A stretch of DNA of 28,012 bases from Bugula neritina (taxonomy: Eukaryota; Animalia; Bryozoa). The stretch covers positions 1-28,012 of the forward strand of contig CAXIUT010000296.1 of the NCBI GenBank assembly GCA_964035545.1, given 5' to 3'. How positions within the stretch are numbered: the stretch's first letter is position 1; every line of letters begins with the position of its first letter. This document shows positions 22,407 through 24,173 of this stretch, piece by piece. The position numbers and the translations under genes were made by a program. Below the pieces are notes generated by a model. That model saw only the letters and a list, made by a program, of their open reading frames with translations. It was not told the origin of the DNA and did no database searches.

Positions 22407-24173
22407 ATGTCAACCATCAAGCTAGCTATTCTTGTGCTCCTGTTGATTACTCTATCGATGGGCGGAATGTAGTATGACTTCTAGTCAGTGTGGTAAAGTG
22501 AATACTATCTAGAGTATAATTTAAGTTAAAAAGAAACCAACCGTAACTCATTGATAAGTTAGAAGTATTCTTTCTGGTAATCTAAGAGGCGACGTTTTAG
22601 TAAATAAGCTGCCTAACTATAGATGTATTTTGTCTATTTTTTAGCGTAAATAAATTACTTAGATATAGGCGTATTTTATTTATACTTATATAGGGTATTA
22701 ATGAATAAAATTCAAGGTGTAGTTTATCTATTTATAAAGGGTAATAAATCTTCTAGAAATAGGTGTAGTTTTAAGACTTATTAAGGGTATTAATGATAAA
22801 ATTAAGGTGTAGCCTATCTATTTACCTTAGTGTACTAGATAATTAAATGGAAGGTGTACTATTTACATTTATATAAGTGTAGTCAATCATTAGATTCTAG
22901 AAGTATTATTCTATTGATCAAAGTGTATGAAATTATAGATTCTAGAAGTATTATTTAAATTGATCTAAGCGTAAAAGATCATTCAATTCTAGTGGTACTT
23001 TTATATCTATATAGCGTATTAACTATGAGATTTTAGTTGTCTTATTCTTTTTAATTTAGTGTATAAAAATATTTAACTATAGATGTTACCTTGCTTTTGA
23101 ACTTAGAGTATTAATACAATTCAAAAATAGCAGTTTTTCTTCTATTTATTATAGAGTATTTATCATAATGACAAAGTGGTAAATATCTATTGATTAAGAG
23201 TATCAAAATAATTCAATATCAGCAGTGCTTTTATTTTAATGCTAGTGTATAGAACCATTAAACAAAAGATGTAATCTATTGATTAATTTTAGTGTATGAG
23301 ATAATGTATTACAGCAGTACCATATTCTATATTTCAGTGTGGTAAAAATCATTCAACTGTAGGTGTATACTTGCGATTGATTTTAGGGTATCAAAAACTC
23401 AATTTAGGTGTACTGTCCTTTATATCTCAGTGCCGTATCAAATCATTTAACTCTAGCTGTATAGCTACTTTTGATTTTAGAGTAATAAAGAAATCAATAG
23501 TAGATGTTCTTTTTCATTTATATAAGTGTATAAACTATTTTAAAAAGATGTAGTTTATTTGATGATGTTAGTGTATTGATTAAAGATACTTTAGGCGTAC
23601 TTTTATTATCATTGAAGTGTAATTAAATGTTTTATGATAGTGGTAATGTTTATTTTAACTAAGAGTGCTTAATTTTTAAACCTAGGTGTAATTTTTGAAT
23701 TAATTAAGGGTATATAACTTTTCAATAAAAGCCGTATTTGTTTTATTATTTGTAGGGTATTTAATTATTTGAATAAAGCCGTAATATGTCATTTATGTAG
23801 CGTATTGAATTTTTTTATTCCTAGGCGTTATCTTTATTTTATTTAGCGTATAAATCATGAGATTTAGAAGTAATTTTATACTAAGAAAGTGTTTCAAATA
23901 TTTTAACTTAGACGTACTTTCCTACTTATCAAAAGGGTACTTAGTTGTTTATCTAAGGAGTAGTTTTTCATTAACATTAGTGTAAAAATCATTTAACTTT
24001 TAGTGGTAATAAAAGATTAATTTAAGTGTATCAAATAATCTAGCTATAGTTGTACTCTTTAAGTGATTTAAAGAGTATTAGATTATCAACTCTAGGAGTA
24101 TTTTTATACTAATCTAAGTGTAATAAAATAACTCATCTTAGGCAGCGTATCATTGATTACAATGAAGGGTTGA
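22407..24173 (+). CDS. Micro-exon gene B: secreted Cys-rich prepro-peptide (68 aa) with ~73 tiny introns
   Basis: The same parse gives MSTIKLAILVLLLITLSMGGIVKTNQRRRFNRGGGCEELLYTMTYSCGGCPNYCLSAARQYGLFRCSG-TGA; exon sizes match gene A throughout the array. Confidence 0.85.

Follow-up and report, generated by a model that had tools for sequence, protein, structure and literature searches.

Two tandem genes on the forward strand of a 28,012-nt stretch of DNA (the window, contig C305 within a 216-Mb assembly) probably belong to a family of secreted-peptide genes in which ordinary tiny introns, each removed singly, interrupt the coding sequence at almost every codon, and in which the arrays of micro-exons evolve by cassette duplication. 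The two genes, A and B, are carried on the two copies of a tandem duplication, copy 1 at about 17800-21415 and copy 2 at about 21640-25246, spaced 3831-3844 nt apart. Their main features are as follows.

17800-25246, no strand assigned: tandem duplication holding genes A and B (approximate boundaries)
18571-20331, + strand: gene A, the paralog used for comparison, with the same 73-intron layout and 67 codons plus stop
20402-20425, + strand: family 3' box of gene A, 24 nt
22407-24173, + strand: gene B, 73 GT..AG units of 20-29 nt, nearly all 20-23 nt
22407-22409, + strand: start codon of gene B, by direct reading
22407-22468, + strand: exon 1 of gene B, ATG and predicted signal peptide MSTIKLAILVLLLITLSMGG, then I; identical in gene A
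22469-22644, + strand: 5' linker of gene B, with six introns of 20-29 nt
22645-24146, + strand: micro-exon array of gene B, 36 codons, each laid out as N|NN by means of two introns
24147-24167, + strand: last coding intron of gene B, followed by the last coding exon GGTTGA
24171-24173, + strand: stop codon TGA of gene B, aligned with the gene A TGA at 20329-20331
24174-24266, + strand: 3' untranslated part of gene B, with two more intron-like units ending at 24195 and 24236
24243-24266, + strand: family 3' box of gene B, 24 nt

Anatomy of the micro-exon arrays

Exon 1 of gene B is followed by linker exons TGTG, A, AAACCAACC, AA, AGGCGAC and AT, which read VKTNQRRH, with a di/tri-basic site adjoining the first array codon. 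When exon 1 is closed at 22468 and a canonical 20-nt intron at 22469-22488 precedes the TGTG exon, every 5' intron starts with GT, and all but one with GTA. The array itself contains 66 introns of 20-24 nt; its exons are of 1 or 2 nt, apart from two of 4 nt and the last, GCAGC. In the 1,2,1,2... spacer series of both arrays the 4-nt exons are TGTG and TGCC, and alternative 5' splice donors lie 3 nt apart at the TGTG exons. Each gene thus parsed has 73 introns, with a joined reading frame of 201 nt in B and 204 nt in A. GT..AG borders are found in 72 of 72 units in each gene, and in 73 once exon 1 is parsed canonically. The array introns (20-23 nt) start with GTA in 81-90% of cases and fall into two classes that alternate strictly in both genes (18784-20300 and 22645-24146): those after a 1-nt exon start with GTATTAAA and are A-rich, and those after a 2-nt exon start with GTA(C/T)TTTT and are T-rich. 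This alternation points to an ancestral two-intron cassette.

The layout stands out sharply from the rest of the window. Sites of the form AG-N(1-2)-GT(A/G) number 17-20 per 500 nt at 18.5-20.5 kb and 22.5-24.5 kb on the + strand and mostly 0-5 per 500 nt elsewhere. A rule-only parser, whose sole demands were GT..AG, a length of 18-27 nt and introns parted by one exon base or more, divided both arrays into 71 units apiece in a 1,2,1,2... spacer pattern, and the exon string of gene B proposed in an earlier, sequence-only reading of this DNA agrees with that parse letter for letter. The chain of units is 68-69 long, compared with a maximum of 6 in 300 dinucleotide-preserving shuffles of the arrays and a maximum of 4 elsewhere in the window on either strand. 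The G+C content is 45% for spacer bases and 16.5% for intron interiors (p 4e-23), which argues that the spacers are not drifting like the surrounding non-coding DNA. Introns of 3n length (21 nt) make up 33-44% of the arrays. A role for in-frame intron stops as a safeguard against retention was considered and rejected: TGA lies in the retained frame of seven introns, compared with 37 summed over the other two frames, a count that is non-independent because introns of one class have motifs in common, and stops are if anything depleted.

Divergence between the two copies and the predicted product

Comparison of A with B shows equal exon lengths in 66 of the 66 units compared and identical bases at 264 of 264 GT/AG positions (about 1e-22 by chance at the interior rate), as had been claimed for every splice site and exon size. 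The intron interiors differ at 198 of 1131 aligned bases (17.5%) and contain 31 indel events. Tabulated by class, all 31 indels fall in intron interiors, partly by construction, since the units were aligned intron by intron; the exon lengths match independently of that alignment and are the independent fact behind the placement. Similarly, the GT/AG parse was carried out on each copy separately, so the retention of every GT/AG depends partly on the parsing rule. That splice bases and exon lengths are kept despite 17.5% divergence and 31 indels nevertheless argues for strong constraint on both. Under the parse that closes exon 1 at 22468, the 5' substitutions at 22478 and about 22520 are intronic, as is the 1-nt indel in 22565-22586, in agreement with their earlier assignment.

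The sequence-only reading had placed purifying selection on the splice sites and the encoded peptide alike; it is borne out for the splice sites and exon lengths but not for the whole peptide. Of 108 exon bases 37 (34%) differ, a rate double that of the introns (Fisher p 9e-5); the differences fall evenly on the three codon positions (13/12/12), and pN/pS is 1.04. Relative to the flanks, exon bases have diverged about ten times as much and introns about five times as much. This pattern fits either a peptide that would be hypervariable on a conserved Cys frame or spacers that would be unconstrained. The further proposal that gene B validates the parse and frame independently stands in that the N|NN frame is supported, but A and B are tandem duplicates of about 3.6-3.8 kb with flanks 97-98% identical.

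Identity between the copies is 96.8% in the upstream flank and 98% over exon 1 and the first introns, and within the arrays it varies as a mosaic, single introns scoring 57-100%. For twelve intron pairs the likeness does not exceed the 0.65 of unrelated same-class introns, several introns are closer to a neighbouring unit than to their positional partner in the other copy, and segment 22587-22624 of the B linker could not be aligned with A at all. Some of the Cys codons lie inside blocks that are 100% identical between A and B, introns included. The GGT GGT GGT run of gene B is located in duplicated cassettes; together with the off-position intron matches, it shows that cassettes of a codon plus its introns duplicate or convert.

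N|NN is the sole frame open in both genes, and splicing restricted to canonical GTA introns brings it into phase with the predicted signal-peptide exon. Of the remaining two frames, each meets a TGA in one copy, NN|N meeting its TGA in gene B as had been noted. The predicted linker is IVKTNQ followed by RRH in B or HQIRR in A, and the predicted mature part is RGGGCEELLYTMTYSCGGCPNYCLSAARQYGLFRCSG in B and RRSDCRYLLDQVNIYCDGCPRECSESAYQYGLLRCSN in A. These predicted peptides are identical at 17 of 36 residues, including five of five Cys (p 0.016). The alignment of all five Cys in this frame, the Leu-Leu pair kept through synonymous codons (TTG CTG in A, CTG CTT in B) and the TGA at the same place in both genes had all been pointed out before and are found here as well. 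The leader, judged by eye, has a Lys, 11-13 hydrophobic residues and then small residues, and is kept in five genes with synonymous changes. Openness of the frame is weak evidence by itself and not a main argument, since TGA is the sole stop and the choice of end splice sites is free: with these sites left free, an ORF-aware parser could force open frames in other phases in single copies. Reading the frame on to the TGA inside the 3' box works in A (through a 28-nt intron) and fails in B, and this variant was rejected.

A Pfam search with the predicted product returned only FeoB_associated below threshold (E 0.039, 14.6 bits against a cut-off of 27), and a search of 5.8 billion proteins with the predicted A product gave no match. 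Since the A product contains no UAR codon, any gene finder run on cDNA would call it. Metagenome contigs, a collection from which the organism may be absent, contained no exact match to either of two predicted spliced sequences, the 5' junction and the C-terminal coding part.

Host chromosome, genetic code and gene family

The window starts with CCCCAA repeats (1-80) and ends with GGGGTT repeats (27930-28012), and is a complete small macronuclear chromosome, telomere-capped at both ends. The largest contigs of the assembly exceed 30 Mb and carry unrelated satellite DNA; a small telomere-capped chromosome in an assembly dominated by such foreign contigs implies that the ciliate is a passenger of another organism. 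Its owner is most likely a peritrich. In the one kinase examined, a NEK-like gene at 5752-7341, UAA/UAG occupies the SP-E and LY-E motif positions, the Glu of which we take to be invariant, with the motif identities assigned from general knowledge of kinases. The 3-hydroxyisobutyrate dehydrogenase gene of the window stops at a TGA where its homologs end. UAR at invariant kinase Glu positions and the TGA end of the dehydrogenase thus indicate UAR = Glu and UGA = stop, and the code predicted from these genes is of the peritrich nuclear type (UAA/UAG Glu, UGA stop). No UGA in a sense role was noticed in the window. Homology establishes two introns in the window, one of 20 nt (GTAC..CAG) in the dehydrogenase gene and, in an HSF-type gene, one of 21 nt (GTAA..TAG) that separates FIRQ from LNMYGFRK; the array introns match both in length and 5' consensus, a comparison with n=2 only. 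Peritrich ciliates are reported to have tiny introns with a narrow length distribution (PMC13685798).

Genes A and B are members of a family of five genes on three chromosomes (two on C305, one on C209 and two on C274) that have a common leader, a fragmented body and a 24-nt 3' box. A hydrophobic leader of the MS[ST]IKL kind also opens the C209 and C274 genes (MSIYKLL... and MSSIKLIALL...). Allowing at most one mismatch, the box TGATYYYCMCAYAATYCTAACCWT occurs exactly five times in 216 Mb, once 3' of each family gene; besides those of A and B, the search gave G000:C209:13298-13321 and G000:C274:10541-10564 and 16149-16172. Guesses at its role are 3' end formation, localisation or translation control. 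The TGA of the box is the stop codon in C209, and in the other family genes the box follows the stop and two intron-like units. The C209 gene has a 115-codon open frame from its ATG under the cheapest parse and six stops in each other frame. The C274 genes yield a single open frame apiece only if a number of sub-optimal splice choices are allowed, and neither support nor refute the reading. These two genes are head-to-head inverted (about 10.2-13.3 kb on the minus strand and 14.0-16.2 kb on the plus strand); their promoter region, leader and first 13 exons are identical, with divergence thereafter, and both 3' ends consist of the stop exon ACGCATGA, two further introns and the family box.

A pattern search of the assembly placed further arrays on telomere-bearing AT-rich contigs, namely C147, C209, C274 (the inverted pair) and C285; loci L005-L034, drawn from a search dominated by satellite DNA of the host's large contigs, were left aside. 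The C285 array (L037:5816-6419), a young one, has 28 introns consisting of two alternating, near-identical 20-nt sequences. Compared with their consensus the introns differ at 9 of 240 and 12 of 280 bases (about 2-4%), whereas the spacers differ at 17 of 42 bases (40%); in the introns of a duplicated four-codon block (DGKY / DGNA) 3 of about 161 bases differ, compared with 4 of 12 in its exons. This concentration of variation in the spacers is not that of a neutral repeat, and means that the spacers are selected to differ or that the introns are homogenised in a way that spares them. An origin of these introns as mobile 'introners' was rejected, as the assembly search found both intron sequences confined to the C285 array.

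Explanations and relation to known systems

In the explanation that we favour, A and B would be real protein-coding genes of a ciliate in which UAR encodes Glu. Each would carry 73 ordinary spliceosomal introns of about 21 nt, with 36 consecutive codons split after the first and third base, and each intron would be recognised singly by intron definition, through its GTA 5' end and an AG about 21 nt downstream. Removal of the introns would join the 1- and 2-nt exons into the 201-nt (B) or 204-nt (A) frame, to be translated into a pre-pro-peptide some 66 residues long: a signal peptide, a short basic-ended linker and a mature part of about 36 residues, hypervariable apart from its five fixed Cys. 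Growth and change of the arrays would come about by duplication and conversion of cassettes of a codon plus two introns. The sequence comparisons show the anatomy, the kept splice sites and exon lengths, the gene family and the duplication of cassettes; transcription, splicing and translation of both genes, and secretion and processing of their products, are inferred.

Several observations count against this explanation: a search of sequencing runs found no RNA run covering the locus, the scans for predicted spliced junctions and for the predicted protein were empty, pN/pS is 1.04 and exon bases outpace introns in divergence, seventy 1-2-nt exons in series lack a precedent in the literature searched, the C274 genes require sub-optimal splicing, one allele has lost a splice donor, and the 3n introns at 33-44%, rarely with an in-frame TGA, are unlike those of the usual tiny-intron ciliates (PMC13685798). 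Runs X2, X3, X4 and X6 yield DNA-like contigs at the locus, introns included. In the gene B allele of X3, 18 of the 20 listed variants lie in intron interiors and the sole exon SNP (23826 C>T, CGC to CGT) is synonymous in the N|NN frame. The donor loss in that allele is 23271 G>A, at the first base of an intron of gene B and at full depth, and no compensating change lies within the 413-nt contig; either the allele is broken or the intron is not needed as predicted. Rearranged or chimeric contigs of X3 also fuse A-like and B-like pieces, joining for example 18721 to 22966 and, with 28 other letters between, 23020 to 23188. These joints (window 18350-24349) suggest further paralogs or recombinant arrays in other strains.

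The arrays might instead be unspliced, as a decayed 43-46-nt tandem repeat that arose from one codon plus two introns and occupies a portion of the locus that is dead or not translated. On this view GT and AG would simply be the best-kept parts of the repeat unit. We regard this as unlikely. The two intron classes, the duplicated cassettes and C285 do make an origin by tandem duplication clear, and the negative search for RNA runs and the 5' splice site lost in X3 are in its favour; yet units that are about 65% identical have all kept GT, AG and lengths of 20-23 nt in 2 x 72 cases, and a neutral repeat would not focus its variation on three spacer bases or keep them at 45% G+C. It is distinctly unlikely that the locus is spliced into joined exons without a message, with the introns or the splicing act as the product and the spacers as filler. 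The better preservation of interiors than spacers (82.5% against 66% in A/B, about 97% against 60% in C285) speaks for such a non-coding locus, as do a pN/pS of about 1, the abundance of stop-free 3n introns and an intron length of 20-23 nt, which is that of small RNAs. Against these stand the conserved frame of the predicted signal peptide that opens all five family genes, a spacer composition far from the non-coding background, and the aligned Cys codons and stop. Introns that have diverged about five times as much as their flanks are also a poor fit to constrained RNA products, a search of the assembly gave no additional copies of the introns and no antisense matches to them beyond chance, and the arrays show no excess of RNA structure.

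Finally, the genes could be coding but decoded otherwise, through another frame, through partial retention of introns (each retained 21-nt intron adding seven residues in frame) or through variable pairing of same-phase splice sites to give many peptides. The 33-44% of 3n introns, mostly stop-free when retained, the alternative donors 3 nt apart at the TGTG exons and the other frames that can be opened in single copies all leave room for this, but N|NN alone stays open in both copies with the Cys aligned, and organisms with a narrow range of intron lengths are expected to splice long composite introns poorly; we consider it very unlikely. Two narrower ideas were rejected. Small-RNA targets were dismissed because A/B introns that are fully conserved match nothing else more often than chance allows, and the notion that adjacent introns pair with each other to assist splicing is contradicted by reverse-complement similarity no better than that to unrelated introns and by folding z-scores near 0.

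The family of split secreted-peptide genes that we prefer has partial likenesses among known systems. Hypervariable, Cys-rich secreted peptides with conserved signal sequences and UTRs include cone-snail toxins, defensin-like peptides and Euplotes pheromones. By general knowledge of such families, A and B resemble them in the conserved leader, the basic residues before the mature part, the fixed Cys, the fast-evolving mature part and the tandem paralogs, and differ in having no sequence match in Pfam or the protein database, an odd number of Cys (five) and an unparalleled gene structure. Tiny introns are familiar in ciliates, at about 25 nt in Paramecium and 15 nt in Stentor and Blepharisma (PMC13685798, PMC5014332). 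The array introns are like them in their GT..AG borders, GTA start and 20-23-nt length but unlike them in coming two to a codon for 36 codons running, and 3n introns, few outside heterotrichs in PMC13685798, are not depleted. Single-nucleotide exons are represented by Fusarium CYP621A (PMC12940212), and micro-exons are described in plants (PMC8831610); like these, the 1-4-nt exons of A and B must be joined to keep the frame. Known micro-exons are isolated between neighbours of normal size and validated by RNA or homology, whereas here about 70 follow one another and are predicted from DNA. A literature search gave no precedent for about seventy consecutive 1-2-nt exons, and the arrays are an extreme case of isolated 1-nt exons and tiny introns that are each already known. 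The SNORD116/115 clusters are host genes with long runs of repeated introns, each giving a small RNA (PMC11608373). They share with the arrays a tandemly repeated exon-intron unit and introns better kept than exons, but their introns are long and hold a folded snoRNA and their exons are non-coding, whereas the A/B introns are of 21 nt and unstructured and exon 1 is a predicted signal peptide.

If the splicing is real, 73 introns per 201-nt frame would be the highest intron density known, and a spliceosome able to join dozens of consecutive 1-2-nt exons would bear on how small an amount of exon sequence suffices for splice-site recognition. The arrays are a natural record of intron gain through cassette duplication, and near-identical introns with variable exon bases call for very strong diversifying selection or homogenisation of introns only. 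It is a doubtful but conceivable further step that the layout of one codon per cassette might be a device for peptide diversity, and so a new way for secreted peptides to evolve fast in a eukaryote. When intron copies undergo unequal exchange or conversion, single codons can be duplicated, lost or swapped with the frame intact, pairing of same-phase splice sites could do likewise in RNA, and homogenisation of the introns may spare the 1-2 exon bases between them. Such genes would escape every current gene finder and read aligner, so a whole class of secreted peptides may be absent from ciliate annotations.

The C147 array (about 61.3-61.7 kb; L036 about 5340-5660, minus strand) lies inside a larger gene and consists of about 13 tiny introns separated by exons of 1-8 nt. 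That gene does not have the family leader, and micro-exons are therefore not restricted to the secreted family.
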